Positions 12,967-60,537 of a stretch of 64,000 nucleotides of DNA are shown one piece after another. How positions within the stretch are numbered: position 1 is the first letter of the stretch; each line of letters begins with the position of its first letter. The stretch comes from Macrostomum hystrix (lineage: Eukaryota > Animalia > Platyhelminthes). The notes beneath the pieces are model-generated. The model was not told the DNA's origin and ran no database searches. It worked only from the letters and a program-made list of their open reading frames with translations. The stretch lies in the NCBI GenBank assembly GCA_950097015.1, contig CATNEN010000015.1, forward strand, positions 1,054,001-1,118,000, in the 5' to 3' direction. Made by a program: the position numbers and the translations under genes.

Positions 12967-12998
<32 letters not shown>

Positions 12999-13085
12999 GG
13001 GCAGCTGATGTTGCTGTTGCTGCTGCTGCTGTTGCTGCTGGAACTGGCCATAGCTCACAGGCCTTGGATTGTGGTGACTGGCCAT
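10236..13085 (-). CDS. RIM-binding-protein-like protein: Q-rich N-terminus, long coiled coil, one FN3, C-terminal SH3; single exon, ~949 aa from the first ATG
   Basis: The uninterrupted ORF begins at TTG 13172 in the track, with the first in-frame ATG at 13085. FN3 segment: PPMNVRISRVLGDGSIMLEWEAP..VAGYRVFVNG. SH3 segment: ARDYRPSDESPSAFPSYELELRRGDDVLTFGPMRPDGMYNAEVGGHRGLVPAQLL, resembling the RIM-BP C-terminal SH3. Orthology is not established, so no symbol is given. Confidence 0.8.
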
Positions 13086-16000
13086 GCCTCGCTTTGGCTC
13101 TAAGGCTCTATGGTTCAAAGGCGGGTCTGCTGCTGCTGGTTGAATTGAATTGCTTGTTTTTGCTGGTGGCAATCCTCACTTCTCGGCGCATTTGGCTTAA
13201 GCAGCGGTTTTTAACAATCGGCTTCTGCCAAACCTCCGTAGAAAAGAAATGGGCGTCTCCCGTCAAAAGAGAGAACTGGCGAAAGAGCTCGCCCTCACCG
13301 GAGTTTCAAAGCGCGCACAGTCTGCCCCCCCATTGGGTGCCAGACTGGCCCAGACGGCACTCTCAAGTATTGGAAGCCGGGGAAGAAGGGAGCATGAGGA
13401 AAATATGCGGGTGATCGAGAGTAAATCGATTTCTTCTCCCGATCAGATCACCCTCCCCAGCCAGTTGGCGGTGGACCTCCCAGTGTTGGTAGCTGCCCTG
13501 GGCTGCTCCGCACAGCCCCAAGTTGTTTCTCCAGCCGAGAATGCTGCAATTGAAACAAGGCACTGGGGTCTGGTGATAGCCGTGCCTTACTGGCTGGGCG
13601 CGTATTGATCAGATCTCAGCTCTCTCTCTGCTTCAGTCCCCTGCTGAGCTGACGCGCAAGTTTCTAATTTTTTTTCGACCAGTTTTTCGCGCTTTTATTG
13701 CCTGGTGGTCCGTAGAGCGCGTCGGAGTCTTTAGCGTTCTTGGATCTCTAAGAAGGACTTTAAGAACCGAATAGGCGACAAGGCGGATAGACAGACGTTG
13801 TACGACATGTAGAGAACTATCGCTAAAATATTCCTGAACGATCCATCCGTTGCGAAGATTTTGAGCAATAAACTTATAAAACCCATAAGAGCCATGACGT
13901 CGTTAAAAAGTTATGTACTCGTGATCAAAATATAAAACGAATGAGTCATAAACTCATACGAGCGTAAGCCCCAACCACTCACTCACCAATGAACATGCCC
14001 CCTCGCGGGCTTGTTCCCCATTGATTGATTGGGCTTTGTTTCTTCAGTGGTATTCAACTCACGCATCCTGTCAGTCAGCGCCAAAATGAGCAGATAAAAA
14101 TATCCTGTTGCCGAAAACCGCTACCAAAAGCAGGCAGTTTCCATATGGGGAACACAGTTGCAGCCATCTATTTTTCTCTGCATTAGTTTAGTCATGAATA
14201 ATTGACAGGCATGAGGCAAAAGCTCCGCGGTCTAACGGACTGGACTTCAATGCAGTGCAAGAGACAGAAACGTGCGCAGGAACTACCGAGCTCAAAATAT
14301 TCTTGAACTCTAGCGCGGAGGGTGAATGCAACGGAAGCATGCGGTATTCGAAAATTAGTGATATATGCGAGAACTGCAGAGGGGAAGACTGATCAGAGGG
14401 TCAGGGGCGGAGGGAAGAAGGATTGGCGAGAGCCGGAGGAAAGGATTAACTGGGATCGAGTGCGGCCTTCTGTATCTGTCCCCACCCCCCACCCGACGGC
14501 TCTGATCCCCAAGCCTTACCCACTCCCCTTCTTGCCGCGTGCAGCTTCTCTCTGCCAGCAGCCATCCAAACCGTCCAGCGAATCCCAGATGGAACTCCCA
14601 TCCCAGCCCGCTCTCTTCCCCATGCCTTCTCCCCTATTCCCCTATGAGGCCAGGTCCTGATCCCTCAGCTGCCAGCCAACCATCCGGCGCCCACCGGCCA
14701 AAAAAGCGTGCCAATCTCTCCTCCAAATGGCCTGCCAGCTCCTAGCACCTCTCTCCCAACCTTACACTTCTTATCCCGTCCAGCCAGCTTGACTCCTCAC
14801 TCCGCAACTCCAGGCATCCCAACTGGCCTCTTCAGACCACAGGAAGAGAGACAGGGAGAGCCTCAACCAGCCGCTGCGTCCAGTGCAAGCACGCATTTTT
14901 CGGAGGCGCTTCGGGGTCACAGCCGCGAAGCCGCACTGCTGACGAACTACAGACCTACCGGCCCACGATTTCTACCGGCAGCCTTTCTGTATATAATTTT
15001 TTCAACCGCACTTCTTTCGGTTCCTCTGAAGCAGTGCTTTTTCTGAGCAGCCTTTGCCAGCTCACGATTCTTACTATTTATTTCTGGAGCGGCAGCAGCA
15101 AGGAGTGAGCGAGGCCGGCAGGGCTCTGGAGGTCCGCTGTCGGCTCTATCTCACCGGTCGGAGGTTTTCAGATACCGCAGCAGTTGGGAGCTTTCTACAT
15201 CGACAGTCATGTCGAAATCGCCTCGAGAGAAGAACAACAGGCAAGATGGGCCCTGTCTTTGCCTTGAAATCTAATATCTCACAAAATGCGTTCGCACTGC
15301 CAGAGTAAAAAAAACTGTAGGAAACGCCCTCCACGAGAAGATTCACCGGCCATGATAGCGAGGGTGGAAGGGTTGAATCGACGGGGTTCCTCATAGATTA
15401 GGAAGATCACCTCATATGGTATTGGGGGCCATGGGCCTTGGAGGCCGAGGTAAACGGGGAGCGCATACGGCCAATGGGACTGTTTATTAACTATTTATGC
15501 CAAACTTTTTGGACGCAGGCCTGGCATCCCCCAGCGCGGAAAAATCCCAGGCTGAATGAAGCGAAAGGTCAGCAGGGAGAAATGAGCCCATTGAATCTGC
15601 GAGCTGCTGCAATAAATATAATGGGATTTTTAGTATTGAGGGGGCTCACAGCCACGAGACTTCCAAGCCAACTTTCTAAATTATACTCAAACTGCCAGTT
15701 AGATTCGGGGATGACTCTAATCTATCTATACGCTGTCATCTGACACTACTATATCTACTGACTACTCTTTTGAATCTACCTTGTCTTCTCTGCCTATACA
15801 CGAGACTGAGAACACGATCTCAACTTGTGCTCAGCGCATGCTCAAAGTGAAGCATGAAAGGCGTATCTGTTGGCAGCGTCATCGATTGATTCATGGAAGA
15901 TCCGATCAAATAAGCGAAAATTCTTCTGGGAGGCGGCATGAGCAGCTCGTCAAGTTTGTCTTCGGTTAGGCTGGTGGCCTTTTTCCTCCGGCGGGTTTTT

Positions 16001-28676: not shown

Positions 28677-28749
28677 TGGTTCGGCCCGGGCTCGAACCGG
28701 GGACCTTCTGTGTGTGAGACAGATGTGATAACCACTACACCACCGAACC
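28677..28749 (-). tRNA. trnV-CAC: tRNA-Val (anticodon CAC)
   Basis: The reverse complement GGTTCGGTGGTGTAGTGGTTATCACATCTGTCTCACACACAGAAGGTCCCCGGTTCGAGCCCGGGCCGAACCA forms a full cloverleaf: 7-bp acceptor stem, anticodon arm TCTGT-CTCACAC-ACAGA, GTTCGA T-loop. A T-run follows immediately downstream. Confidence 0.95.
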
Positions 28750-29375
28750 CTTCATGTTAGATAAGTATTAGCCGAAATATATAGACGATTGTCACGGAAA
28801 AAAAAGGAGAAAGAAGCAAATAAATCGTTTTATTTGACTCGTCAGTTAAGAACGGTTCGAGTTAATTCAATCAGAAAAATCATTTCATAAAACCTATTTT
28901 TCCTATTAAGGCAAAGCATTCACTGCTTCGACTGCTGAGTCCCCTAAGTTACTTTAATTTGCGTTTTGAATGGCTAATTTTTTATTTAATTTCAAACTCG
29001 TTCTTTTTCTATCTGCAAATTTATTTAAATCTAAAACATTGTTAAATGGTTCAAAATTAAAATAAGGTAACTGCCGTACTAGCACTAGAGAGCATAATAC
29101 AGGTATTTAAGCGTATTATTAGACGCATGTATTTGTTTTTAATTCGCTTTTATTTTAAAAATATTTAAGGACTAAGAATACTGAATACAAAGTCCCATAG
29201 AGAAATCTAGCAGCTAGGACAGGGGCCAGGGCACGCAACAGTGCGACCAGGAGCTGTAAGTTTAGTTTTTAAGAAAATGTACTTTTTGTTAGCGTCTAAA
29301 CAGTAAAATTACAAAATTAACTCAGGAACAAATTATGTAGCAATTTAGATAGCTCCCAAGTCACCCAAAACGATC

Positions 29376-29501
29376 GGCAACGGCCATATCATGTTGAGAA
29401 CACCGGTTCTCGTCCGATCACTGAAGTTTTGCAACGTTGGGTTTTGTTAGTACTTGGATGGGTGACCGCTTGCCGCTTGGGAATGCCAAATGCTGCTGTC
29501 T
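29376..29501 (+). rRNA. RNA5S: 5S rRNA variant, probably a pseudogene
   Basis: GGCAACGGCCATATCATGTTGAGAACACCGGTTCTCGTCCGATCACTGAAG..GTTAGTACTTGGATGGGTGACCGCTTG..GGAA aligns with metazoan 5S and ends at TTTTT. It carries a 7-nt tandem duplication CCGCTTG (29466-29479) and an altered box A. Confidence 0.85.
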
Positions 29502-30266
29502 TTTTGGCCTTTTGGGATATTACAAAACGGACCTAAAACACAGATGATTACGAGAGTTTGGCGAGATTTTGAGTAGTATGTAGCGAGTATTCGATTAATT
29601 TTTTTTTAAAACCTTTGTATTGCAAGTTTTATAAGTCGTCCTGACGAAAGGAAACCTAGAAGCAAGGTTGTCAAAAGTCAAAATAAAATGAGTCCTCATC
29701 TGATGAAAATTCACGCAATCCGGATTTCTGTGAAATATTTATTTCTACGAAACAAAAAAGGTCCCTGGTTCGAATCCTGAGTCGTGAGTACGAGTTCCGA
29801 TAGCTTCGGCTTCTTGATGATTTGTTTTATTTTAAAATATGTAAATATTAAGAAAGCAAGTACTATGCAGCTTCATTAATCAATTTAGATACAATTTTTT
29901 TTACAGCACCATCGTTATGTTAGGCTTCGCTAAAAGTTAAATCGAGCACGACCATTCTTGACTTTGGCTGTGACAGTTACTATAAGTTATTCTACTTTTA
30001 GAAGTAAAAAGTTGACTTTCATCTCTCATCTCAAAACTAATATGTGGTGACGTCACTCTGGCTGCGGCTGGCTAAGGCAGCTGTGTTGTGCACCTGCCCG
30101 GCACGTTATCTAATTATTTAGAATGTACTGTGTATGTACGTGCTTTAAACCTTTCTATCCTATGTGCACGCGCGGAGTCAGTTTTATCGCTCACTAGAAG
30201 CACTGCTGTAGTGCCCTGCTTTCATTATTTGTCATCTCGTTGAGAGGCTTGAGTTTCGTTCTACAA

Positions 30267-30641
30267 CAGGGGTCGGCAAACTCCGGTCCGCGGGCCAGAT
30301 GCGGCCCTCGAGCCCAAATCCGGCCCGTTGCCCCTTCCGACACCTACTAGTCTCATCTCTCCCGTGTCTTGACTCCTCCGTGTCTCATCTCTCCCGTATG
30401 GCATCTCTCCCATGTCTCGTCTCTTCCGTGTCTCATCTCGCCATTGTCTCGTCTCTCCCGTACCTTATCTCTCCTTTGTCTCATCTCTCTCGTGCCTCAT
30501 CTCTTCTCTCTCATCTCTCCTGTTTCTCATCTCTCCCCTATCTCTGATATATTTCTCTTAGATTTCTACAGTCCGCGCGGCCCGCTGTCGTCTTTTAGGT
30601 TCTATTTTTGGCTCGCTAGCAAATAAGTGTGCCGACCCCTG
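30267..30641 (+). mobile_element. Non-autonomous hAT (Charlie-like) MITE, 375 bp
   Basis: TIRs CAGGGGTCGGCAAAC / GTGTGCCGACCCCTG. Perfect 8-bp TSD TTCTACAA at 30259-30266 and 30642-30649. Subterminal GGTCCGCGGGCC motif and an internal decayed (TCTCATCTCTCCC..) repeat. Confidence 0.9.
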
Positions 30642-33470
30642 TTCTACAATCTTAAGCGAGGTCTCTACAGTGTGCCGACCCCTGTTCTACAATCTTAAGC
30701 GAGGTCTCTGCAGTTTGCCGACCCCTGTTCTACAATCTTAAGCAAGGTCTCTACAGTTTGCCGACCCCTGTTCTACAATCTTAAGCAAGGTCTCTACAGT
30801 TTGCCGATCCCTGTTCTACAATCTTAAGCAAGGTCTCTGCAGTTTGCCGATCCCTGTTCTACAATCTTAAGCAAGGTCTCTGCAGTTTGCCGACCCCTGT
30901 TCTACAATCTTAAGCAAGGTCTCTACAGTTTGCCGACCCCTGTTCTACAATCTTAAGCAAGGTCTCTGCAGTTTGCCGACCCCTGTTCTACAATCTTAAG
31001 CGAGGTCTCTGCAGTTTGCCGACCCCTGTTCTACAATCTTAAGCAAGGTCTCTACAGTTTGCCGACCCCTGTTCTACAATCTTAAGCAAGGTCTCTGCAG
31101 TTTGCCGACCCCTGTTCTACAATCTTAAGCAAGGTCTCTACAGTTTGCCGACCCCTGTTCTACAATCTTAAGCAAGGTCTCTACAGTTTGCCGATCCCTG
31201 TTCTACAATCTTAAGCAAGGTCTCTGCAGTTTGCCGATCCCTGTTCTACAATCTTAAGCAAGGTCTCTGCAGTTTGCCGATCCCTGTTCTACAATCTTAA
31301 GCAAGGTCTCTGCAGTTTGCCGACCCCTGTTCTACAATCTTAAGCAAGGTCTCTACAGTTTGCCGACCCCTGTTCTACAATCTTAAGCAAGGTCTCTGCA
31401 GTTTGCCGACCCCTGTTCTACAATCTTAAGCAAGGTCTCTGCAGTTTGCCGACCCCTGTTCTACAATCTTAAGCGAGGTCTCTGCAGTTTGCCGACCCCT
31501 GTTCTACAATCTTAAGCGAGGTCTCTGCAGTTTGCCGACCCCTGTTCTACAATCTTAAGCAAGGTCTCTACAGTTTGCCGACCCCTGTTCTACAATCTTA
31601 AGCAAGGTCTCTACAGTTTGCCGACCCCTGTTCTACAATCTTAAGCAAGGTCTCTGCAGTTTGCCGACCCCTGTTCTACAATCTTAAGCGAGGTCTCTGC
31701 AGTTTGCCGACCCCTGTTCTACAATCTTAAGCAAGGTCTCTACAGTTTGCCGACCCCTGTTCTACAATCTTAAGCAAGGTCTCTACAGTTTGCCGACCCC
31801 TGTTCTACAATCTTAAGCAAGGTCTCTGCAGTTTGCCGACCCCTGTTCTACAATCTTAAGCAAGGTCTCTGCAGTTTGCCGACCCCTGTTCTACAATCTT
31901 AAGCGAGGTCTCTGCAGTTTGCCGACCCCTGTTCTACAATCTTAAGCAAGGTCTCTACAGTTTGCCGACCCCTGTTCTACAATCTTAAGCAAGGTCTGTA
32001 CAGTTTGCCGATCCCTGTTCTACAATCTTAAGCAAGGTCTCTGCAGTTTGCCGACCCCTGTTCTACAATCTTAAGCAAGGTCTCTGCAGTTTGCCGACCC
32101 CTGTTCTACAATCTTAAGCAAGGTCTCTACAGTTTGCCGACCCCTGTTCTACAATCTTAAGCAAGGTCTCTACAGTTTGCCGATCCCTGTTCTACAATCT
32201 TAAGCAAGGTCTCTGCAGTTTGCCGACCCCTGTTCTACAATCTTAAGCAAGGTCTCTGCAGTTTGCCGACCCCTGTTCTACAATCTTAAGCAAGGTCTCT
32301 GCAGTTTGCCGACCCCTGTTCTACAATCTTAAGCAAGGTCTCTGCAGTTTGCCGACCCCTGTTCTACAATCTTAAGCAAGGTCTCTGCAGTTTGCCGACC
32401 CCTGTTCTACAATCTTAAGCGAGGTCTCTGCAGTTTGCCGACCCCTGTTCTACAATCTTAAGCGAGGTCTCTACAGTTTGCCGACCCCTGTTCTACAATC
32501 TTAAGCAAGGTCTCTACAGTTTGCCGACCCCTGTTCTACAATCTTAAGCAAGGTCTCTACAGTTTGCCGACCCCTGTTCTACAATCTTAAGCAAGGTCTC
32601 TACAGTTTGCCGATCCCTGTTCTACAATCTTAAGCAAGGTCTCTGCAGTTTGCCGATCCCTGTTCTACAATCTTAAGCAAGGTCTCTGCAGTTTGCCGAC
32701 CCCTGTTCTACAATCTTAAGCAAGGTCTCTGCAGTTTGCCGACCCCTGTTCTACAATCTTAAGCAAGGTCTCTGCAGTTTGCCGACCCCTGTTCTACAAT
32801 CTTAAGCGAGGTCTCTGCAGTTTGCCGACCCCTGTTCTACAATCTTAAGCGAGGTCTCTACAGTTTGCCGACCCCTGTTCTACAATCTTAAGCGAGGTCT
32901 CTGCAGTTTGCCGACCCCTGTTCTACAATCTTAAGCAAGGTCTCTACAGTTTGCCGACCCCTGTTCTACAATCTTAAGCGAGGTCTCTGCAGTTTGCCGA
33001 CCCCTGTTCTACAATCTTAAGCAAGGTCTCTGCAGTTTGCCGACCCCTGTTCTACAATCTTAAGCAAGGTCTCTGCAGTTTGCCGACCCCTGTTCTACAA
33101 TCTTAAGCAAGGTCTCTGCAGTTTGCCGACCCCTGTTCTACAATCTTAAGCGAGGTCTCTACAGTTTGCCGACCCCTGTTCTACAATCTTAAGCAAGGTC
33201 TCTGCAGTTTGCCGACCCCTGTTCTACAATCTTAAGCAAGGTCTCTGCAGTTTGCCGACCCCTGTTCTACAATCTTAAGCAAGGTCTCTGCAGTTTGCCG
33301 ACCCCTGTTCTACAATCTTAAGCGAGGTCTCTGCAGTTTGCCGACCCCTGTTCTACAATCTTAAGCGAGGTCTCTACAGTTTGCCGACCCCTGTTCTACA
33401 ATCTTAAGCGAGGTCTCTGCAGTTTGCCGACCCCTGTTCTACAATCTTAAGCGAGGTCTCTGCAGTTTGC
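30626..33470. repeat. 43-bp satellite, 66 units, made of hAT right TIR + TSD + flanking DNA
   Basis: Unit AGTTTGCCGACCCCTG-TTCTACAA-TCTTAAGC(A/G)AGGTCTCT(A/G)C. The span of 2845 bp equals 66x43+7. Confidence 0.97.
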
Positions 33471-35950
33471 TGCTTGCTGCAAAATAAAGAAAGCCTACAA
33501 GAGCTTTAACAGCGCAATTCTGCTTAGTATTTTCGTTCTTTCGCAGTAGGAAAAAAGAGAAATCAGTCAAATTGTATATAGTACAATGCACACAAGCAGC
33601 AAAAGTCGGTAATAGCCAGGAAAACGGAGAGTAAAAAAACTGAAAACAATTGCAAAAAAAGTTTGCATCCAGCAGACTGGGACTTTGTACATAGTGGAAC
33701 CAGTAAGCATGATAAATAAGGAAACACACGGCGGATAATAAGGGGCCACACTAGCACAGTAAATGGTACAGAACGCTATAATGCTTTGGCTAGTAACAAA
33801 TAAATGTTGCTTTCTTCTAGGAGAAAAAGTATATAAAATACAAAAAAGAATAAAAAACAAGTAAGCCTTTGCCTAAATTTCATTACAGCCAGTAGCAGCT
33901 CCGCATTGCGGCCAGGTGCGGGCTGGCTGGAAGTCCACGGACACTCATATTGGCAAATATAAATAATGAAAACAGGACACTACAGCAGTGCTTCTAGTGA
34001 GCGATAAAAAGCCAAAAACAATGAATAAAAGCAATAAAAACAACTCAAATTTAGTGAGATCTCAGGACCAGACAGAAAGGCACAAGAGCACACGGAGACC
34101 CCGAAGAAAAAAGGCCAAGAGACAGTTCACCGATCCCAACTCACATTTGCCCATTATAACATGTCTGATAACATCTCCAAACACACAACAGTTTGATGCA
34201 GTCACTTTCTAAATAGTTAGACTGGCAGTATAAAGCATCATGCTAAGTATTCTCCCATTCCCAAACGCCATGAAAATCAAAAGAACGGGCTGAAATTTTC
34301 CGTTCTATCCGATGAAACATCTTCCAGAATCACAAAACATCACAAGACATCGTCGAGATATTCAACTTTTAACTCGTTGAAAGGTCTTGGAGAAGAATGG
34401 CTGAATATCTCAAGGATGCTACACATCGGTGCCTGAACTAAGCAACACAGGTAGCAAGAGATGTGGCTTGATATCGGTCGAAAAAACAACTTGGTATTTC
34501 CACTGCTAATTGGCAAAGCAGCAGCAACAACAGACACTACTAGTAGTAGCAGCACAAGAAAAAAACAGTAGCGAGTTTAAAGAAAAGTCAAAGTGGCACA
34601 CAGAGTTTGTACATTCGCTCTAAACAACTGTAAAAGTACATACATAATATGCCGCCCAGCTCTCACCAGATAAGGACACAAAAGTTGAAATAGAAACACC
34701 AAGCCAGAAAAGATTACATGTAACTAGCTGACAAATGACAATTCAATCAGACATCTTTGATTCGTACAGTACTCTCTGGTAAAATGGGAAGACATGTATG
34801 TGTTAGCTGCGCGGCTTAGCATGCCGCACCTTGGGAAATCAATAATAATAAAAACTGTATCGCACATCGCGGGGGATGCTGCCCTGGCAAGGCGAAGTTA
34901 ACACACAAAAATTCAGTTTCGGTGAGCAAATTTGGAAAAGAAAGCGACAAAAAGTAACATCTGTCTCAGAAATCTAATTTACAAAGTAACTCTTTTAGAG
35001 AAGCAAATAGGCAGATTATTTATATAATAGTGAATAAAAGATAATGAAACAGCCAAGGTGGAGTTTGTGGCAAGTGCCGCACATGCCAAACAGAAGGTGA
35101 TGAACCGCATGGAGTTGTGTACAAGCTACAGCGCACCAATATATTTGGATAAACATGAGTATAACTATATAGGTGTGTGTGTAGATGCTCATATATCGGA
35201 TAAAATTTGGAAGACAATAATAAAATAGCAATAGGATCAGTTGGCCTCGGTTAAAAACAACAACAAAAACAACACTCGACAAACAATCAATACAAAGGGC
35301 ATTCGCAAGCAGATTCTTATTTGGCTGTGAATCTCCCGCTACTCATTAGGAGTAGTACAGAAGGGTATGATAAAGCTTAAGTGCATCTAACCCCAAAAAA
35401 CACAAGACAAGACTATCATCATGGGTAGATTGGTAGAATTGAAACCGAGTACAGTTAGGCCTGTTGTACAACCACTGGATTTCAAAAGCTGCGTACAGCA
35501 ACCTTTTTAGTCTGTGGACTAAACCCACTACCGGGGAGGCCGCTACACCCGCCCAAATGTGAGTTATTCGGCTAAGAAGTAGTCTGCCTTGCTACTGCCA
35601 TAAGTAGACTGTTTAGCATATTTTCATAAAACAGGAGAAAAAATCTATAAAAAGTTAGTTTGTTCGATAAAACAATCAGGAAAAAATTGAATTTATCCAT
35701 GAGAAAAAAATCTGCGCCAAGAGCTGCGTGAAACAGCTGGGAATAACAGTTCGGGACAGTTTAAAAAACAATGTACCATTGGGTTTGAGAAGACGGCAAG
35801 TTTGGTGGCGGTGGAGGGTCAGGGGGTCGTGAGCTGGAATATTGGAATTCCTAAAGAATTGCTGGAATACAGAATAACGCACGGTGGGCATGAGATTCTC
35901 GGATCTGAGACTCACAGTAAGCCAGTTCAGGAGATTAGTTTGAGTGTCCA

Positions 35951-36721
35951 TCAGAGCTGGTGCGCGCTTGGCCCGGTCAGCAGTTTGTGCTGCAACCAGA
36001 TTGCCTTCAGGACGTTTGCCACCTCCGGGCTGAGCGGTGGCGGTGGCGGCGGCGGCTTCTGCTGCAGCGGCAGCTGAGGCGACTGAATAGCGAGCTGCGG
36101 GGGCGAAGGCAAGGTAGCAGCCGAGCCAGCACTAGCAGCAGCAACTGCATGGCCCCCAGAGCCAGCATGAGTAGTGTAGTGCTTCCTCAGATAGTCGGCC
36201 CTGGCGAAGCCCTTGCCGCAGAGCTCGCAGCGGTGCGGCTTGCAGCCGGAGTGCACGGTGCGAATGTGCCGGTTGAGCGTGGACCGGTCGAAGAACTCAC
36301 GGTCGCAGGCCGTGCAGGAAAGGCGAGTTGTTCCAGGCGCCGGCTGGGACGGTTTCGGCGATGACAAACTCAGCTGCTGCTGCTGCTGAGCAGTCGCTGT
36401 GGTCGGCGCTGACAGTGACGGTGAGAACTGACGCGCAGGGCCGTCCTTGAGCGACAAGTCCAAAGGCGCCTGGGAGCAGCCGCCACCGCTGCCGCTGAGG
36501 GCACAGTCGTCATCTTCATGCTCCTCCAGATCGACGATGTGTCTCAGCAATGCTGAGTGACCGTTTTTGCCCGCTGCTGCTTGGTCGGACGGGTACTGCG
36601 TCAGCAGGCTGATGGACTGCGGCTGCGCTGGCGGCAGAGGCAGCGGAGACGACGCCGATGCAGCCGGTGAGTGCAGCCGGGGCACAGGGCCGCGCAGCGA
36701 GATGACGGGCTTTCGCCGCAT
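35951..36721 (-). CDS. C2H2 zinc-finger protein (two fingers) with a PLDLS CtBP-binding motif; single coding exon visible
   Basis: Fingers CTACDREFFDRSTLNRHIRTVH and CELCGKGFARADYLRKHYTTH with an SGCKPH linker, plus APLDLSLK. A strong acceptor (TTTTCTGCAG) lies 2 nt before the ATG, so an upstream exon or trans-spliced leader is possible. Confidence 0.85.
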   Translation of the reverse strand: MRRKPVISLRGPVPRLHSPAASASSPLPLPPAQPQSISLLTQYPSDQAAAGKNGHSALLRHIVDLEEHEDDDCALSGSGGGCSQAPLDLSLKDGPARQFSPSLSAPTTATAQQQQQLSLSSPKPSQPAPGTTRLSCTACDREFFDRSTLNRHIRTVHSGCKPHRCELCGKGFARADYLRKHYTTHAGSGGHAVAAASAGSAATLPSPPQLAIQSPQLPLQQKPPPPPPPLSPEVANVLKAIWLQHKLLTGPSAHQL

Positions 36722-38334
36722 GCCTGCAGAAAATTTTGGGTTGTTTTTTTCATCTTCGCTGCATTTCTTTGAACATCATTTTAAACAAGCTAACTTATAC
36801 TTATTTATTGATTTATACCCCCCATGAACTTGTGAACTCTTAACTCAACAAGTAACTACTTGTTGAGTTAATTGTTACTACTTGTTGATATTTTTCTCTT
36901 TCAAAGTTCCAATCTCAGACTGTCTATCCAACAGTTTCTATTCATGTTTGAGAACCTCTCATAAAGGCTAGCAGTTATGACTATTATGTAGAAGAAAGAA
37001 ATAAATGAGATGAGATATACTATCTGAGATAAACTTACTAAAATAAATATAAAAGAGTGAGATAATAAGTAAAACAAATCAGTCTAAAAGAGTAAAACTA
37101 ACAATCAGTAAAACTAACAAAGTCTTAGATAGAGACTGAATATTAGCAACTAAGGTTTCTTAATTTTTTTACAAAATACTATAAATAACAAAAAGTTTTT
37201 AGTTAAAACCTAAACCTATTTTTTGTTTTAATGCTTTTGTTTATTTCGACTATTTGTTTTTCCAGATATTTTGTTTACCTAAAATTAATCTTATGCATGC
37301 TAGTGCTACTGTTTTTCTATCGCCTTTTTTAATCCAATTGTTCAGCCTTAACCATCAAATAAACAAAAAAATCAGCACCCAATTGGTGTGTGCACTTCAA
37401 TAATAATAATAATAATAATAGATTGAAAATGGCTTGCTTGAAAGAAGAAAAAATCATAAACAAGGCTTATTCACTTTCATGTGTCACAAAGAGTTGCTGT
37501 CTAATTATTTTCAAGTGTTTTTTATTTAATTACTTGTTGTTCTTTGTAACAATCAGCATCAAATTTTCTTCTTTCCTGCAACTTTAACATCTATGGCTGG
37601 CTGCCCACCTTCATGAAATTTAATCAGCAAAACCAAAAAAGTGGTGAATTCAGCCAGACTTCTTAAACTCACCATGACTAACTTCCACCTTTGCCAAATA
37701 GTAAAGGGAGTTAAGATAGACTCACAACTATTGATGGCCATGTAACATATCATTACTGACTAGGCTAACTGCAAGCAAAGCAATATTAAATCATTGGGAA
37801 GCAGCTCCAGCATTGGCTGACACCCAAACTATATCAATAGCTATGCCTAGGACTACCATCAATGTTGGCACCAGCACTCCATTAGTAGAGGCTTGTTCTT
37901 GGCTAGCATACTACTGGGCCTGTTAGATCAGCCAGAAGGAGGTTAGGGCCTGGGTCCACGCTGCCTGACAGACCAGTGTGGACTGGCTCAATTTATATAT
38001 GACATGCCAATAATACTTATTGAACCATCACTATTTCTAATGAGCAAGGTAGACCAGCCCAGACTATTAGAAATGATGAGTCAAAATTTATGCTTTGAAA
38101 ATATCATCAAGGGCACTATCATAACTCTTATATTTATACCTACCATTGAAAAAACATACAACTATTTTACACAAGGAAATCTACAAATTGTCAGGTATAC
38201 TGTATATGCTCTTAATTCATAATCATTAAAACATAAAATATGTGCTAATGATGGAATCATTAGTTTATCATTATTGTATCATTTCATACTTCTATACTTT
38301 CATTTCATACTGTTCTGAGGGCTGGAAATGAATA

Positions 38335-40009
38335 TAGCATTTTGCAGGCTAGTAGAGAAAATAAGCAAGCGATAAAATAATCGATGACAAAGTCAGTGGA
38401 ATTTTTTACACTATGGTCAAAGCCATGCACATTCCTGCAACCAAATAAATAATGTGAGCACCCAATTCATAAGAGTCATTAGTTCTTGTGTTTCTTCAGC
38501 TCGAAATGGACGCAATCGACATCGAGGAAGATGACAGTTTTGAGGAGGATGGAGACAGCTTTGTCACAGCGGAGGACGCAGTTCAGGCGGCGGCAGCACG
38601 TGGTCCGTACTCCAAGATAAGCAACGAAAAATATGAACTGATAGTCAGTGCGCTTGAGCGAGGGGACAGTGCTGTGCAGATTTCGAGGTTTTTTTAATGT
38701 AAAGGTACCAACTGTGTATACTATCCAACGGCACTACGAGCTGACGGGACGTCGTGATCGACTCCGTCGAGGAGGCGATCGAACGTCGAAGCTTGGAAAC
38801 CAAACGTGCAACTGCTTCTAGATTCACTGGATGCCAATCCATTATTGACACTTAAAGAGTTGCGTTGCAAACTGGAGCATTCGTTCGACAGTCTTCGCGT
38901 AAGCGAAGCAACACTTAACCGATCTCTAGACAAACACCTGATCACGCTGAAATGCTTAGGCAGAGATGCTGACCTGCCGGTCGCGCGGAACACGCCAGAA
39001 AATAAAGCACGCCGACAAGCATTTGCACAGTGGCTGCTTGACCTGCCTCCGGATTGTCACTTGATCTATATAGACGAGACAGGGTTCAACATATGGACAA
39101 GACGATCTCTAGGGTGCAGTTCGCGTGGTCAGCGTGTTAGGCGCACTTTGCACACGCAGCGCGGTGTGCAGGTGAATGTCATCCAGGCCATCTCACCTGG
39201 CCTCGGTCTGGTACACCACAAGATTTTGGGCCAGACGCTAACTGCGAATGTGTTTCAAGTTTTTATCGAAGAGTTACTCGACGCTGTCAACAATCGAGAA
39301 GAAGTCGATAATGCGGATCAATTCTGCATCATTATGGACGGTGCTCGATTTCACAATGGCGTGAGGCTCCCGCAACAAAATGAAGCTAACTGGCAAGTCA
39401 TGCAGCTGCCGCCGTACTCACCATTTTTGAATCCGACTGAGAGTGTGCTCTCCTGCCTGAAGGCGACAATAAAATGTCAGTTGTCTTTGCCCCAAGTTCA
39501 GCTCGAACTTGACAATACCACACCACAGACAACACTATGCGAGTGGCGAATTCTTGTTCTTCAGAGAATCGCAGAGGAAGCAACTTCCGAAATCACACCG
39601 GTCAAATGTGGAGGATGGTTTCGGAATGCACTCCGCTTCATCCCTAGATGTGTCGCGGGAGAAGACATCGTTTGATTTCTGCCATATATCGGACAGCTTC
39701 ACTGAAGGAAATCTTTTTCGAGTTTCATTTTGTACTTTTCCCTGGGTTTTGCGTACTAGTTTTTCATATGTTTCGTCATATTAATAGTCACTTTTTGTAC
39801 CACGCCATTTAGCTTCTTAAATATACAGCATCACAGTTAGCTGTCGAATGTTTGCTAAGCATTGAGAATTGATGAATTGCGTGCTCACATTATTTATTTG
39901 GTTGCAGGAATGCACATGGCTTTGACCATAGAGTGTAAAAAATTCCACTGACTTTGTCATTGATTATTTAATTGCTTGCTTGTTTTCTCTACTAGCCTGC
40001 AAAATGCTA
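38335..40009 (+). mobile_element. IS630/Tc1/mariner-superfamily DDE transposon with ~136-bp TIRs
   Basis: 38335-38470 is the near-perfect reverse complement of 39873-40009, and both ends are flanked by TA. The internal transposase has IYIDETGFN, IIMDGARFH and LPPYSPFLNPTE motifs. Confidence 0.92.
38506..39675 (+). pseudogene. DDE transposase interrupted by two compensating 1-nt frameshifts
   Basis: The ATG 38506 frame stops at a T7 run (38689-38695). The shifted frame reads NVKVPTVYTIQRHYELTGRRDRLRRGGDRTSKLG (HTH/linker-like). The original frame resumes at ~38806 and runs to 39675. Confidence 0.8.
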
Positions 40010-40648
40010 TAGTATAGAAGTATACTAATTTAAGTCTTTATCCATAGGCCTAGATAGATCTCTGCTAACAATGGTGAAACAAAGGACTCTTTCCATTTCA
40101 AGATTTGACATTTAAGCAGTTTTCTTTTCTGACTTTAAAATATTTTTAGGGCCCTTATTGGGATAGGCCTATAGTATTTTTGTGGATGGCATCTGGCATA
40201 CTATCATGATGCATTGTAGCATAGCACCATGACACACTCAGTGGGTCAGGATCCAAGAACTTGACTTATAATGCACTAAATACAGTGGCCATTGCTATCT
40301 TAAGCAAGGAAACAAAACATGTAACTTGAGGAAGTCAACATCAACAGTAAAATGTAAATAGGTCAAACTGTAAACTAAAACAATGTCACGCTAGGATTTA
40401 AAAATTGCCATGACACTGCTGGCATTATTTTGTTACTCAATTCCCTTATGTTGATCCTATTGAACATGGACCTTTTATATATGATCCCCAATGTAAAATA
40501 TATAATTGGATTTTTCTTGGTTGTCAGTATAATATTTAGGTTTAGGAGTTTCTGAAAGGAATGGTAGGGGCCTATGCCATGATTTGTTGCTTGATTAGGC
40601 CCAAATGACACCTATAAATAGTAAGTAAAGCAGAGTATGTTTAGTATA

Positions 40649-43719: not shown

Positions 43720-46700
43720 ATGGAGCCGGAATCGGCAGCCGTGTCTGGCGGAGTCGATTCCGCTGAAGCGGCAATCGGCGCCGACCTGTGGGCCTCGCTA
43801 ACGCTGGAACAGCAGGCGGGCATCGGCGCCGCGGTTGACCGGCTGAGCGGCCAGCTACGCCGAGAGCGCGAACTGCGCCGAGTGGCCTGCGTTGACAGCG
43901 AGCAAGCCGTCTTCGACGCCGAGGCGCGGACCGCCAGCCTGTCAACTCGCCTCACCACTCTACAGACGGAAGCCGAAGCCGCGGCAACCCGAACTGCCGA
44001 GCTGGAGCGTCGTCTCGCGGACGCCGAGGCTGTTGAACGCGAGGCGGCGTCGATCAGACTGGCGTGCAGTGCCGCTACAGAGCGGGCTGACTCCCTGGCC
44101 GCCGAAGCCGCCGATTTGCGACGTCGTCTGGAGGAAGCCGAATCTGCGCGTGACTCGGCCGCCGAACGATTAGAGAAGCTGGAACGCGAACGGCTGACGC
44201 TGACTCTACAGCTAGACGAGAAGGCTTCGCTGGCCGACTGTCAGGCTGGTGAGTTCCTGGATTCTTGACCACAGTACTTTTGAAGAACTTTGACCTACTG
44301 AAAAGGCTTTCAGAAGCCTCATAAGGCAAAATGTTTCGACTCGTATCTAAAATATCCCAGATCCTCAGATTCAGATAGAACAATCCCAGATCCTCAGATT
44401 CAGATAGAATCATCCCAGATCCTAAGATTCAGATAGAATCATCCCAGATCCTCAGATTCAGATAGAATCATCCCAGATCCTCAGAATCAGATAGAACAAT
44501 CCCAGATCCTCAGATTCAGATAGAATCATCCCAGATCCTCAGATTCAGATAGAACAATCCCAGATCCTCATATTCAGATAGAATCATCCCAGATCCTCAG
44601 ATTCAGATAGAATCATTCCAGATCCTAAGATTCAGATAGAATCATCCCAGATCCTAAGATTCAGATAGAATCATCCCAGATCCTCAGATTCAGATAGAAT
44701 CATCCCAGATCCTCAGATTCAGATAGAATCATCCCAGATCCTAAGATTCAGATAGAACAATCCCAGATCCTCAGATTCAGATAGAATCATCCCAAATCCT
44801 AAGATTCAGATAGAACAATCCCAGATCCTCAGATTCAGATAGAATCATCCCAGATCCTAAGATTCAGATAGAATCATTCCAGATCCTAAGATTCAGATAG
44901 AACAATCCCAGATCCTCAGATTCAGATAGAATCATCCCAGATCCTCAGATTCAGATAGAATCATCCCAGATCCTAAGATTCAGATAGAATCATCCCAGAT
45001 CCTCAGATTCAGATAGAATCATCCCAGATCCTAAGATTCAGATAGAATCATCCCAGATCCTAAGATTCAGATAGAACAATCCCAGATCCTCAGATTCAGA
45101 TAGAATCATCCCAGATCCTAAGATTCAGATAGAATCATCCCAGATCCTAAGATTCAGATAGAATCATCCCAGATCCTAAGATTCAGATAGAACAATCCCA
45201 GATCCTCAGATTCAGATAGAATCATCCCAGATCCTAAGATTCAGATAGAATCATCCCAGATCCTCAGATTCAGATAGAATCATCCCAGATCCTCAGATTC
45301 AGATAGAATCATCCCAGATCCTAAGATTCAGATAGAATCATCCCAGATCCTCAGATTCAGATAGAATCATCCCAGATCCTAAGATTCAGATAGAATCATC
45401 CCAGATCCTCAGATTCAGATAGAATCATCCCAGATCCTAAGATTCAGATAGAATCATCCCAGATCCTCAGATTCAGATAGAATCATCCCAGATCCTAAGA
45501 TTCAGATAGAATCATCCCAGATCCTCAGATTCAGATAGAATCATCCCAGATCCTAAGATTCAGATAGAATCATCCCAGATCCTCAGATTCAGATAGAATC
45601 ATCCCAGATCCTCAGATTCAGATAGAATCATCCCAGATCCTCAGATTCAGATAGAATCATCCCAGATCCTCAGATTCAGATAGAATCATCCCAGATCCTA
45701 AGATTCAGATAGAATCATCCCAGATCCTAAGATTCAGATAGAATCATCCCTGATCCTAAGATTCAGATAGAACAATCCCAGATCCTCAGATTCAGATAGA
45801 ACAATCCCAGATCCTCAGATTCAGATAGAATCATCCCAGATCCTCAGATTCAGATAGAATCATCCCAGATCCTCAGATTCAGATAGAATCATCCCAGATC
45901 CTCTGATTCAGATAGAATCATCCCAGATCCTAAGATTCAGATAGAATCATCCCAGATCCTAAGATTCAGATAGAATCATCCCAGATCCTAAGATTCAGAT
46001 AGAACAATCCCAGATCCTAAGATTCAGATAGAATCATCCCAGATCCTTAGATTCAGATAGAACAATCCCAGATCCTCAGATTCAGATAGAATCATCCCAG
46101 ATCCTAAGATTCAGATAGAACAATCCCAGATCCTCAGATTCAGATAGAACAATCCCAGATCCTCAGATTCAGATAGAATCATCCCAGATCCTAAGATTCA
46201 GATAGAATCATCCCAGATCCTAAGATTCAGATAGAATCATCCCAGATCCTAAGATTCAGATAGAATCATCCCAGATCCTAAGATTCAGATAGAATCATCC
46301 CAGATCCTCAGATTCAGATAGAACAATCCCAGATCCTAAGATTCAGATAGAATCATCCCAGATCCTAAGATTCAGATAGAATCATCCCAGATCCTCAGAT
46401 TCAGATAGAATCATCCCAGATCCTCAGATTCAGATAGAATCATCCCAGATTCTCAGATTCAGATAGAATCATCCCAGATCCTCAGATTCAGATAGAATCA
46501 TCCCAGATCCTAAGATTCAGATAGAATCATCCCAGATCCTCAGATTCAGATAGAATCATCCCAGATCCTAAGATTCAGATAGAATCATCCCAGATCCTCA
46601 GATTCAGATAGAATCATCCCAGATCCTAAGATTCAGATAGAATCATCCCAGATCCTCAGATTCAGATAGAATCATCCCAGATCCTAAGATTCAGATAGAA

Positions 46701-49700
46701 TCATCCCAGATCCTCAGATTCAGATAGAATCATCCCAGATCCTAAGATTCAGATAGAATCATCCCAGATCCTAAGATTCAGATAGAATCATCCCAGATCC
46801 TAAGATTCAGATAGAATCATCCCAGATCCTCAGATTCAGATAGAATCATCCCAGATCCTCAGATTCAGATAGAATCATCCCAGATCCTCAGATTCAGATA
46901 GAATCATCCCAGATCCTAAGATTCAGATAGAATCATCACAGATCCTCAGATTCAGATAGAATCATCCCAGATCCTAAGATTCAGATAGAATCATCCCAGA
47001 TCCTCAGATTCAGATAGAATCATCCCAGATCCTAAGATTCAGATAGAATCATCCCAGATCCTCAGATTCAGATAGAATCATCCCAGATCCTCAGATTCAG
47101 ATAGAATCATCCCAGATCCTCAGATTCAGATAGAATCATCCCAGATCCTCAGATTCAGATAGAATCATCCCAGATCCTCAGATTCAGATAGAACAATCCC
47201 AGATCCTCAGATTCAGATAGAACAATCCCAGATCCTCAGATTCAGATAGAACAATCCCAGATCCTCAGATTCAGATAGAACAATCCCAGATCCTCAGATT
47301 CAGATAGAACAATCCCAGATCCTCAGATTCAGATAGAACAATCCCAGATCCTCAGATTCAGATAGAATCATCCCGGATCCTCAGATTCAGATAGAACAAT
47401 CCCAGATCCTCAGATTCAGATAGAACAATCCCAGATCCTCAGATTCAGATAGAATCATCCCAGATCCTCAGATTCAGATAGAATCATCCCGGATCCTCAG
47501 ATTCAGATAGAACAATCCCAGATCCTCAGATTCAGATAGAATCATCCCAGATCCTCAGATTCAGATAGAACAATCCCAGATTATTCGTGATGGGAGTTCG
47601 TATTGATAATGAAGGTATTTTGTCTGTAATCAGGTCGCATCGAGCGCCTAGAAACTGAGCGCCAGCACCTGGAGGATCGGGTGCGCCTGCTCGAGTCCCA
47701 GCTCACTGAGCATCTGTCATCAGCATCGACCTCCGCTGCCGCTGCCTCGGCTGCCCAGTTGGAGAGTTCAACGCTCTCGGCACTCAGCTCCGGCGCCGAG
47801 GAGCTGCGCAGTCTTCGAGCCAAGCTGGACAGCGCGGAGTCTCGATCAGCTGAGTTGTCAGCCCGACTGGAATCGGCTCTGGCCCGGCTGGAATCTGATC
47901 GGGAGGAGCGGCAGCAACTGGAGGAGTCTTATCAGCGCCAGCTGGCTGCTGAGAGAGCCGCTGCCGAGCTGTCCAAGGCTACAGCTGATGAGCAGAGTGT
48001 CAGGTGAGATTTCGCAATTGTCTGCTTTTAATTAGATTGTCGTTCTGTGCGTTTGGTTTTCTGTATTTCACGGTATTGTCCTTGTCTGTAATATACCGCA
48101 ATTTATCATTTACTGAAGCCTTATTCTAGTCTGTAAACTGCTCTGCCGTGTGTGCCTCTGGGAACAGACTGTACTTCACTGTACAGTCTGTTATTCACTG
48201 TACAGTCTGTTATTCACTGTACAGACTGTACTTCACTGTACAGTCGGTTATTCACTGTACAGTCTGTTATTCACTGTACAGTCGGTTATTCACTGTACAG
48301 TCGGTTATTCACTGTACAGTCTGTTATTCACTCTAGTCTGTTATTCACTCTACAGTCTGTACTTTCTGTACTTCACTGTACAGTCTGTTATTCACTGTAA
48401 AGTCTGTTATTCACTGTACAGTCTGTTATTCACTGCACAGTCTGTTATTCACTGTACAGTCTGTTATTCACTGTACAGTCTGTTATTCACTGTACAGCCT
48501 GTTATTCACTGTACAGTCTGTTATTCACTGTACAGTCTGTTATTCACTGTACAGTCTGTTATTCACTGTACAGTCTGTTATTCACTCTACAGTCTGTACT
48601 TCATGGTGCAGTCATGGTGCAGTATGGTTGAATACACCTGGTCTGTCCATCTTTCTGATCACATGTACACAGTAAATGACACAGGCGATTCCCTTCGACT
48701 GCTCCCGCTCTCCAGGTGCTCGGAGCTGGCCAGCGCTGCTGACGGCATGCGAGCCCGCCTGGCCGAGGCCGGCAGAGATCGCCAGCTGATGGAGCGCAGC
48801 TTTGCCAGCCAGCTGTCGGTGGCGGCCGAACGGCAGTCCGAGCTGGAGTCGACCATCGCTGAGTTGAAGTCGCGCCTAGCCGAGGCCGCCAGCGAGGTCG
48901 ACAGGCTGCGCGCCGGCATCGGTGCCCTGTCCGAGGCGGAGATCGAGCGCCTGGCACCCGCCGCCGCAGCCACCAGCCGCATGCTGAAGCGGGGAAAGAC
49001 TCTCACGCAGATCTACGCTGAGCACGTGGAGGTCCAGGGCCAGCTGTCCGCGGCACGCCTGGAGGCTGACAAAGCCAACTTGGCGGTGGCGCATATCCTT
49101 GAAGAGATTCAAGCCAAGGTGCCGCTGCTTCGCCGGCGTCAGGAGGAGTACCGGCGGGTCCGGCTGTCCGCCAGTCAGCTGGCCAAGCGGCTCGACGACT
49201 CCGTGGCCCAGATGTGCGATCTGAAGCGCGGCAATGAGGAGCTGGCTAGGAAGGCCGCCTTCTTTGAAAGGGAGAATGCTAGACTGAAGGCCAGGGCTAA
49301 AGATCTGGGCGAGCAGGTGAGGGGCTCGACTTTTGACCAGCTTCACCATTCAGTGTGTTGCACAGCTCATTCAGTGTTGCACGGCTCATTCAGTGTGTTG
49401 CACGGCTCATTCTGTGTTGCACGGCTCATTCAGTGTGTTGCACGGCTCATTCTGTGTGTTGCAAGGCTCATTCTGTGTTGCACGGCTCATTCTGTGTTGC
49501 ACTGCTCATTCTGTGTTGCACTGCTCATTCTGTGTGTTGCACGGCTCATTTTGTATGTTGCACGGCTCATTCTCTATGTTGCACGGCTCATTCTGTGTGT
49601 TGCACGGCTCATTCTGTGTGTTGCACGGCTCATTCTGTGTGTTGCACGGCTCATTCTGTGTGTTGCACGGCTCATTCTGTGTGTTGCAAGGCTCATTCTG

Positions 49701-52700
49701 TGTTGCACGGCTCATTCTGTGTTGCACTGCTCATTCTGTGTTGCACTGCTCATTCTGTGTGTTGCACGGCTCATTTTGTATGTTGCACGGCTCATTCTCT
49801 ATGTTGCACGGCTCATTCTGTGTGTTGCACGGCTCATTCTGTGTGTTGCACGGCTCATTCTGTGTGTTGCACGGCTCATTCTGTGTGTTGCACGGCTCAT
49901 TCTGTGTGTTGCACGGCTCATTTTGTATGTTGCACGGCTCATTCTGTATGTTGCACCCCACTTGACCATCTCAATCTGCGCAGGTGACTCACCTGCTCGC
50001 TGAGGTAGAAGCCGCACGCGGCCGCCCATTGGCCGGAGGTGCTGGGGATGCCAGCTCAGAGGCTGAGGCGGCCCAGCCTGACAGGTTAGATAACCAGCAG
50101 ATGGATGAGGGCAGCGGAGGCGGCTCTCTGCTATCTGAGCAGCCTCAATCGACTCAAGATGTCATCAGTAGTTCGCTGCTGACCTTCTCGGACATTGGCC
50201 AGCTTCAGCAGCGCAACATCGGCCTGGTGGAGGCGTCGCGCGAGCTGGCCGCCAGGTTGGAGGTTCTGGAGCGGGAACGCAGCGACGCTAGCGAGCTCCG
50301 GCTGCGGCTGGAGGCGGCCACATCCGAGCTGGAGTTGGCCCGCACCGCTGAGAGGCAGCACCGAGACCTGCTGCGCGTGGCCAGTCAGCAGCGGGACATG
50401 TACAAGGTGAGCACTGCTTCCTCTTCTCATGCTGAGTTCTTCATCCGGTTTCATCCTGAGTCCCCTAGGTTTCACCCTGAGTCCCCTAGGTTTCATCCTG
50501 AGTCCCCTAGGTTTCACCCTGAGTCCCCTAGGTTTCATCCTGAGTCCCCTAGGTTTCACCCTGAGTCCCCTAGGTTTCACTCTGAGTTCATGAGGTTTCA
50601 TCCTAAATTCATGATGTTTCATCCTGAGTTCATGAGGTTTCATTCTTTCTTGATTTCTGAAGCTTTTATCATCAGAATCAACGACCTCTATCTGAGTCGT
50701 TAGAAACTAATTATAAACGCGCAACCCTTTACTTATAAGTAGACTAGCTAGCAAAAATTGTATTTGATAGCCAGCAATTCTCATATTCGTTCGCAGCTGC
50801 TACTGGAATCCGCCAAGAATTCTTCCGCCACTGATTCGGCTGCCGCTGCGGCTGCTGCGGCCCCAGTTTCCACAGAGACCAGTCAGCAGCAGCAACAGTC
50901 CTCATCCTCGGCCAGCAGCGCAGCGCTCGTTGCCGCCCACGCCGAGCTGTCAGCCGTTCGCTCCCAGCTGGCTGAGCGGGATCGTCAGCGCGCCGTTGAG
51001 CTGGAGGGCGCCCGCGCCGAACTCCTCGAGGCGCGCCGCACCGGCTCCCGCTTGTCTGCCCGCCTAGAGGCCGCTCAGCGACGCGCCGAGCTTGGCGAGG
51101 CCGGCTGCGCGCGCTATCGCCGCGAGATTGACATCTTGCGCGAGATGAACGAGAAGTATGCGGGCATGCTGGCCAGGCACGAGCGGGAAGCCGTGCAACT
51201 GCAGGCCCAGCTCATTGACCGGGCCGAGTCCAGGGCCCGGTTGGAGGCCCAGCTGGAGTTGGCCCGTCAGCAGGCCAAGGCGCTGAGAGCTGCCGAGGCG
51301 AGGCTAACTGTGGAGTGTGAGCAGCTGAGGCAGGACCGGCTGAGGCAAGGCCTGCTCATGACCAGCCTGCAGGCTGTGCAGGTGAGTCTGCTGAGAGTCA
51401 GCCAGGACGTCTGGCCTTCTTTGCACCTGTGAGGTGTGGGTTGCATAGAACTCAATTAGTGAGCATGTAGCACAGTGTTTAAATATACGAGATTCGGACC
51501 TATAGGTCATGGGTTCGAATCCATGTTTTTAACAGTAGAAAGACAACGGCAGTAGTTCAAATATCCGCTGCCTACTAGCTCCCAAATCTAATGACCGATT
51601 TTCCGGAAAGTTTTCCGCCCTCAGCCGTTGAGTCAGCATCGTCGAGATGATTCAAGTGATTCTTGTCGAAGAACCGGTTGGCAAGGACAACTAACGTAGC
51701 TCTGCATAAACCTCAATGGCGAATCCAAATTGGTTTGAATTTTACCCCGTGTTCTAAAAATCTGGCTATTTTAAATACCTCCTTGATCTTACTACTGTTA
51801 AAAGTGGCTGCAATATGGGTACCGACGTCAGCTGCAGCTTTGCGGCTGGCTTTACATCTCGTGAGCCCTTCTTCAGGGCGCCTTCCGCTTGTTTTCCTAC
51901 ACACAATGTGGCGCAGTTCATCGCTTATGAATTATTTGCAAAACTAGCCTCGTCGGAATTCCCCAGGTCAACCTGGAGAAACGCGACCAAGAAGTTCGCC
52001 TGGCTGCCGAAGCTCGAGTGTCGGCAGCTACTGAGCGGGCCGCATCCCTGGAACGCCGATTGGCCGATGCCGTGTCCGCAGCGTCAGCCGAGCGGTCAGC
52101 TGCCGAGGCAGCGGCTGCCAACTCCGCCAAGCAGCTGGCAGAGCTCTCCGAGCGCCTGGCCGCAGCTCAGGCCCGGCTGAAATCTGCCGAGGAGCTGGCC
52201 GCCAACTCTGCGGCCGCAGCTGCCGCCGCCGGAGTCAAGACTGCCGCTGCCGAGGAGGACTCGGCGTCAGCGGAGCAGCCGGAGCCTGTCGACGCTTCGG
52301 GCCAGACGGCTTCCGCTCTCGCCAGCGAGCAGGAGCTGGGGGCCCTGCGGGAGCGAGTGCAGGCCCTGGAGCGAGACTGCGACTTCCTCAGAGGCCAGGT
52401 GGACAATTATCGGGCCATGGCGGAGGGCGCCGAAGCTCGCCTCACTCAGCAAGCCGAGGAGCACGCGGCGGCTCTGGCCGAAGCCGAGAGTCGTCTCAAA
52501 GAGAGGCAGGAGTCCATTGACTACTATCGGTGAGCTGCGCCTTGGACTAACTTCTTTTATGATACTAATGCTGCTAGATATTTAGTTGTTCTTCCCAATG
52601 TCTGTCAGTGCAGTCTATCGCGTTCGCGTATCGCGCACCAAGGTCGATTCTGCGGCGACGCCACATGACGTCAAGAAGGCTTGAAGGCTTGTCGAGAAAT

Positions 52701-60418: not shown

Positions 60419-60537
60419 CCAGGAATGCAGCTACACTAGTCTAGTATTGACCTCCTCAGTTGCAGTTCCATAGCCAAGTGCAGACCCAACAGAGGTTGTC
60501 ATGGCAACACCAGTGAAACCCAATCGCTAACCCGCAG

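Follow-up and report, generated by a model that had tools for sequence, protein, structure and literature searches.

Architecture of the locus

The locus lies in a 64-kb stretch of DNA from Macrostomum hystrix (hereafter the window, meaning the whole stretch analysed) and consists of a short DNA transposon, the right end of which runs without interruption into a long tandem array (Table 1). Each end of the transposon, a non-autonomous MITE, abuts a copy of the 8-bp TSD TTCTACAA, and the two copies are the same in all eight positions, as is expected of a hAT insertion. Its 16-nt TIR, CAGGGGTCGGCAAACT, starts with CAGGG. The right TIR differs from the complement of the left one by a single mismatch, a G for a T, and the end-to-end likeness of the two termini stops at exactly 16 nt. 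TIRs of hAT elements are short and start with CAG or TAG (YARNG). The target itself has a T at position 2, an A at position 7 and TA at positions 4–5. It therefore fits nTnnnnAn, the pattern of Ac/Hermes type elements, and nnnTAnnn, the pattern of Buster type elements (PMC10368747, PMC3517528), equally well, and a single site does not separate the two types. Taken together, the 8-bp TSD, the CAGGG terminus and the target pattern point to a hAT element.

In the start of its TIR (CAG(G/A)GG...GGC), the 8-bp TSD and the TA at TSD positions 4–5, the element resembles Mar, a hAT MITE of the Buster family from Drosophila, the terminal repeat of which reads CAG(G/A)GGTAGGC (PMC3517528). Unlike the element described here, Mar resides in another host, has another internal sequence and is without a reported array derived from its end (PMC3517528). 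The interior of the Macrostomum element carries about 12 tandem copies of a 16-mer, GTCTCATCTCTCCCGT. At 54861–55268 this 16-mer recurs as an array of 26 copies, in a diverged relative of the element that occupies approximately positions 54808–55510 of the window.

The region 28900–31055, which comprises the element with the flank to its left and ten array units, was compared with several runs, all of them in the form of contigs; word depth summed over contigs serves here as a rough guide to copy number only. In run X1, the summed word depth of the element body reaches 1e5–7e5, compared to 72.7 for the unique flank, and the bin adjoining the TIR corresponds to about 4500 single-copy equivalents, a summed depth that is not a copy number. 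Around 30043–30195, the left flank also consists of a low-copy repeat, paralogues of which may contain an empty site. The element family is very abundant and has thousands of copies. A 20-nt motif from the subterminal part of the element was searched for in metagenomes, with four chance bacterial matches and zero element copies, and a search of the literature for the TIR sequence as text returned irrelevant matches only. Seven ORFs of the window were scanned against Pfam; no cognate hAT transposase was found among them, the only transposase being of the Tc1/mariner kind (DDE_3).

Table 1. Features of the element, the array and their surroundings (window coordinates)
Feature	Position	Strand	Basis or remark
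Left arm of a 49-nt inverted repeat bracketing element and array	30182..30230	.	47/49 complementary to 33961–34009
TSD, left copy, TTCTACAA	30259..30266	+	Read directly; same as 30642–30649
Non-autonomous hAT-like MITE, 375 bp	30267..30641	+	16-nt TIRs matched at 15/16, perfect 8-bp TSD outside
Left TIR, CAGGGGTCGGCAAACT	30267..30282	+	Sequence reading, TIR comparison
Internal 16-bp repeat of the element, ~12 copies of GTCTCATCTCTCCCGT	30350..30544	+	Tandem Repeats Finder: period 16, 11.9 copies
Right TIR, AGTGTGCCGACCCCTG; doubles as the opening 16 nt of unit 1	30626..30641	+	
43-bp minisatellite, 66 units and a 7-nt partial unit	30626..33470	+	Tandem Repeats Finder and in-register cutting
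TSD, right copy, TTCTACAA, first of 66 occurrences	30642..30649	+	8/8 identical to left copy
Terminal AGTTTGC: partial 67th unit, or original flank 7-mer behind the putative microhomology	33464..33470	+	
Right arm of the 49-nt inverted repeat	33961..34009	.	Pairs with 30182..30230

Structure of the array

Tandem Repeats Finder describes the interval 30626–33470 as a repeat with a period of 43, 66.2 copies, 97% matches and 0% indels. When cut in register, the interval yields 66 full units followed by AGTTTGC (2845 = 66×43+7), after which the periodicity stops and the sequence continues with TGCTTGCTG. Every unit is composed of the whole 16-nt right TIR, the 8-nt TSD and 19 nt of the flanking host sequence. 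With these three landmarks legible in each unit, every breakpoint can be placed to the exact base. A preliminary description of this DNA, made from its letters alone, had proposed a 375-bp hAT MITE with a perfect TSD followed by a 43-bp array, the same composition of the unit, and a length of exactly 66×43+7. The coordinates and the 8/8 TSD agree with the first of these proposals, in-register cutting confirms the second, and the third stands as well, with no indels in the array.

Unit 1 starts with AGTGTGC, which matches the terminal AGTTTGC in six of seven positions, and the consensus unit starts with AGTTTGC, so that the array closes on an incomplete last unit. The window contains 67 occurrences of the TIR 16-mer (0.33 are expected from shuffled sequence). 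Its match to the left TIR is perfect in 55 of the 66 units; two units keep the original mismatch, and the remaining nine have another one, a C>T substitution at unit position 11. The preliminary description was too generous in this respect. It held that the first unit alone differs, that later units complement the left TIR perfectly, and that the locus offers 66 right ends, each better matched than the original. The G variant, AGTGTGCC, is present in both units 1 and 2, and the perfect complement and the improved match both apply to 55 units and not to all 66.

A coding role for the array was considered and rejected. Stops occur on both strands of the unit and, as its length of 43 is not divisible by three, in every reading frame; no ORF of at least 150 amino acids is found within the array.

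The array is a single-locus minisatellite

Assemblers are prone to assign a wrong copy number to long, near-identical arrays, and the preliminary description named an assembly artefact as the outcome that would undo its account. Run X1, the run that matches best and may be the very sample behind the window assembly, gives word depths of 276–5832 in the array bins (mean about 2600), i.e. 4–80 times the single-copy level of the unique flank. Depths of this size are those expected if some 66 copies were divided over a few variants, which argues that the array is private to the locus and has about the assembled copy number. Runs X3, from a separate study, and X7 each contain one 73-nt contig at 30945–31017 with one differing letter. 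Since 73 = 43+30 is the size of a collapsed one-unit cycle, both runs contain the junction between two units. The ordered pattern of unit variants presented below is also unlike that of a collapsed or inflated repeat. That the array or its length was made by the assembler is thus scarcely credible. In run X2, from the sister species (organism B), neither an array contig nor the unique flank is present.

No copy of the array unit was found outside the array in the 64-kb window, and exact-protein look-ups of three neighbouring ORFs led to no other contig carrying the locus. The monomer of a dispersed satellite occurs at many loci and in high abundance, whereas the 43-bp unit has an X1 depth of about 66 copies and a single location in the window. 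The array is real and looks private to its locus; it is a single-locus minisatellite and not a dispersed satellite.

This genome readily forms arrays of this kind, and they are common in the vicinity. Tandem arrays make up 17% of the window, and ten minisatellites have units of their own (including one of 29 bp × 111 and one of 22 bp × 70), the exception being the 16-mer that belongs to the element itself. Against this background the 43-bp array is unremarkable. By a rough estimate from several thousand element copies and about ten arrays per 64 kb, chance alone would place tens of arrays in the genome across an end of this element family. Simple and tandem repeats account for 15% of the genome of Macrostomum lignano (PMC5730564). 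The same species provides the best database match (51% identity) of a zinc-finger ORF located 2.5 kb to the right of the array; at this level of protein identity the nearest relative is too distant for orthology of non-coding sequence.

Variation among units and expansion of the array

The units are 98.1% identical to their consensus. Five positions vary, three of them commonly, and there is only one singleton substitution in 2838 nt of units, which speaks for a recent expansion or homogenisation. Units of identical type are adjacent in 23 pairs, compared to 13.7 ± 3.1 in shuffled orders (P = 0.004). The order of unlike types is uneven, too: A>C is found seven times and C>A once, C>B five times and B>C once, and D>A three times with no instance of A>D. 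Together these types make up a recurring block, B..D..A..C. The recurrence of this block implies that multi-unit blocks were duplicated, and it fits unequal exchange or conversion better than single-unit slippage alone.

The edges of tandem arrays are typically poorly homogenised. At unit position 33, a G that is part of a CpG is kept in units 1–2 and 63–66, and the interior units mostly have an A. The G is taken to be the older state, which survives at both edges of the array.

Origin of the array

An array of 66 units and 7 nt implies a starting sequence in which a 7-mer was present on both sides of a 36-nt core. One copy, described by AGT(G/T)TGC, would have been located at the inner edge of the right TIR, and the other, AGTTTGC, 19 nt beyond the TSD. 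The best reading is that of a minisatellite confined to this locus, born accidentally over the right-hand boundary of a hAT-type MITE and most likely neutral, a reading to which we assign a probability of roughly three in four. The history would comprise three steps. The element inserted at TTCTACAA, with duplication of 8 bp, an event still legible at both of its ends. A 43-bp segment made up of the 16-nt right TIR, the right TSD copy and 19 nt of the flank would then have been duplicated in tandem, either by slipped-strand mispairing or by microhomology-mediated repair, between the copies of the 7-nt direct repeat that bracket it at the inner TIR edge and in the flank. Finally, unequal exchange or conversion of multi-unit blocks, for which the pattern of unit variants provides a trace, would have produced the 66 homogenised units. 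The TIRs within the units would be passengers in this process.

Established models of minisatellite birth describe events of the same kind. In the model of Haber & Louis (1998), the duplicated segment is flanked by direct repeats of 5–10 bp, and in that of Taylor & Breden (2000), slipped-strand mispairing takes place at non-contiguous repeats and leaves an incomplete terminal unit (both summarised in PMC3389668). In humans, transposable elements are the source of 23% of minisatellites, and 7 bp is the length of the direct repeats in most of those that have them at their flanks (PMC3389668). The preliminary description attributed the birth of the array to slippage at its 7-nt near-microhomology. 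The anatomy of the locus, the length of 66×43+7 and the models just named all agree with this proposal; the arithmetic is consistent with it and is not a proof of it. Elsewhere in the window, arrays close with overhangs of 0–16 nt, so that 66×43+7 by itself does not prove birth at a microhomology, and the 7-nt overhang could alternatively be what a subsequent deletion at the edge left behind. Judged from the sequence, a microhomology step in the birth of the array is likely.

The G/T difference between the two 7-mers may be accounted for in two ways. The duplicated TIR may already have carried the G, with the T contributed by the flank, or the TIR may originally have carried the T, with the G arising later in unit 1 and being copied to unit 2. 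Either scenario costs one mutation and one extra local event. If the T is original, the 7-nt repeat was perfect, and the apparent improvement of the TIR by the array is no longer a coincidence. The 55 perfect TIRs most likely reflect an original T, or else a T that came from the flank by chance.

Three other routes to the array were tried and discarded. Insertion of the element into a pre-existing satellite is at odds with the left flank, which is not unit sequence, and with the unit, which holds the tip of the element itself. Repeated insertion into a shared TSD is ruled out by the 19-nt flank, which is the same in every unit, and by the fact that only 16 nt of the element are repeated. Slippage driven by a hairpin was rejected on the basis of the predicted folding of three units as single-stranded DNA, which is worse than that of shuffled sequence (−5.4 kcal/mol versus a shuffled mean of −9.1, z = +1.6).

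A possible contribution of transposase to the birth of the array

The start of the unit coincides with the exact inner boundary of the 16-nt TIR. Under an accidental birth, a match of this kind would be expected in a few per cent of cases; a stall linked to transposase would account for it. Two variants of such an origin can be formulated: transposase bound to the right TIR would stall replication, or repeated nicking or an aborted excision at that end would be repaired from the sister chromatid, and either event would seed the duplication. A unit boundary at the inner TIR edge is more natural under this origin. The chemistry of hAT transposition takes place at the element tips, and microhomology repair of transposon-induced breaks has been proposed as a route to tandem repeats (PMC9659126). 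Against it, the locus shows neither an excision footprint nor palindromic filler, and contiguous sequence is copied exactly in the units. The other nine arrays in the window were formed with no recognised transposon end in or beside their units, the seven ORFs scanned provide no cognate transposase, and a coincidence of the boundaries is no rarer than about 1 in 20 to 1 in 40. A transposase-linked origin is unlikely.

Function

The preliminary description proposed several roles for the array. It suggested that the array could supply alternative right ends, making the element mobile together with a variable number of units, or that it could be a sink for transposase, a hotspot for insertion or a source of small RNAs. 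The locus does present 55 units in which a perfect TIR is found beside a hAT-type target. In addition, the right end of Hermes is bound by no BED domain (PMC10368747), so that a bare TIR might serve as a right end once the left end is held. The remaining observations point the other way. None of the 66 TSD copies contains an insertion (0 indels in Tandem Repeats Finder), and the word depth is that of a single locus with some 66 units, leaving no excess that could represent mobilised copies. The unit is absent elsewhere in the window. Several hAT elements require 150–450 bp of subterminal sequence (PMC10368747), and the array units lack that of the element. The stretch was present in no RNA run, which in itself is not evidence of silence. 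The proposed roles thus find no support at the locus, and a functional array is very unlikely.

In its strongest form, this proposal would make the array-borne TIRs live substrates. The cognate hAT transposase would pair the left end of the element with any of the 55 perfect right ends, and the position of the unit boundary may itself go back to transposase bound at the TIR during the birth of the array. We regard this as highly improbable. If it were true, the locus would be a transposase trap, or a source of derivatives composed of the element and n units that seed the 43-mer elsewhere, and it is only through use of its TIRs by a transposase that the array would gain interest.

Relation to known tandem repeats of transposon origin

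The mechanism proposed above for the accidental birth of the array is a known one, with no new one indicated, and the array is a clear but ordinary local minisatellite across a transposon edge. It is a very clean natural example of the start of a tandem array, in which the transposon tip, the TSD and the host flank can be read in every unit. As such, it could be used with students, or contribute a single case to a survey, across this genome, of the reasons for its abundance of private minisatellites.

The closest parallels are the minisatellites proposed to be born between short direct repeats (Haber & Louis; Taylor & Breden; the Alu-derived cases of Jurka & Gentles; PMC3389668). Similar to these, the Macrostomum array has a 7-nt bracket, an incomplete end unit and a unit derived in part from a transposable element, and later expansion by unequal exchange or conversion is likewise part of that model (PMC3389668). 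It differs in that its unit straddles the element, the TSD and the flank and that each unit contains a complete TIR and TSD; its state at birth is inferred.

Satellites that have a terminal repeat of a DNA transposon as their monomer are known from several animals and include TIR-220 of Tetris in Drosophila virilis (PMC4079207), Xstir and miDNA4 of Xenopus and the MITE-linked satellites of bivalves (PMC9659126, PMC12628747). The present element family also shares with them an internal repeat that can expand. Unlike the Macrostomum array, which occupies a single locus and combines 16 nt of element with 27 nt of host sequence, these satellites derive from repeats internal to the element or from whole elements and are usually found at many loci.

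A TSD located between repeated transposon sequences is also a feature of tandem transposon dimers that originate from double insertion in a shared TSD (PMC12628747, PMC9659126), and hAT MITEs arranged in arrays have been described in cod, where they accumulate in tandem (PMC12368964). In both of these cases whole elements are repeated, whereas in the Macrostomum array it is the last 16 nt of the element.

Sequence flanking the element and the array

The 375-bp hAT-like element and the 43-mer array that adjoins it are enclosed by a 49-nt inverted repeat, the arms of which are complementary at 47 of 49 positions and would have been spaced ~550 nt apart prior to insertion of the element and expansion of the array. 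Word depth (summed over contigs of sequencing runs, and a rough guide to copy number only) suggests that this inverted repeat is low-copy. It has no evident target-site duplication, and could represent either an inverted duplication that arose locally long ago or the ends of an older element. The sequence flanking the element on the left (30043–30195) is a genomic repeat with a depth of roughly 10–50 times single copy and variant letters at 30081, 30147 and 30152. Paralogues of this flank might supply the 'empty site', from which the pre-insertion sequence could be reconstructed.

Neighboring genes and repeats

Features identified in the window around the element and the array
Feature	Position	Strand	Details
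Long open exon	10236–13172	-	978 aa; RIMBP2-type Ig-like domain and SH3 domain
tRNA gene	28677–28749	-	Rfam, 66.4 bits
5S rRNA match	29376–29501	+	full-length, 73.4 bits; followed by T run
49-nt inverted repeat, left arm	30182–30230
49-nt inverted repeat, right arm	33961–34009
C2H2 zinc-finger ORF	35951–36721	-	256 aa
Tc1/mariner element	38333–40011		inverted repeats of ~80 nt, 95% complementary
ORF within Tc1/mariner element	38806–39675		DDE_3 domain, E = 5e-21
Diverged relative of the hAT-like MITE's family	54808–55510		left end TAGGGGCTTCGGC, then CCGCGGGCC motif

The gene to which the long open exon belongs is RIM-binding protein-like, and the array may be located either in an intron of this gene or upstream of it. 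In the database, the zinc-finger ORF is matched best, with 51% identity (E = 1e-64), by a Macrostomum lignano hypothetical protein. The 5S-like copy, separated by 0.6 kb from the tRNA gene, has a word depth of about 50–90 times single copy, a figure that is likewise approximate. Because the abundant genomic version differs from it at 29422, 29429 and 29430, the copy in the window may represent a variant or pseudogene.

The diverged relative of the element carries 26 copies of an internal 16-bp repeat (54861–55268), compared with ~12 in the element itself; a clear right inverted repeat was not found in this relative. Besides the 43-mer array, the window contains nine minisatellites with units of 16–47 bp (among them those at 18–485, 44354–47581, 49347–49956 and 58879–60423), the largest of which are made up of 111 units of 29 bp and 70 units of 22 bp. 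Apart from the 16-mer shared with the element, every unit is private within the window, and the nine minisatellites together with the 43-mer array occupy 17% of it.
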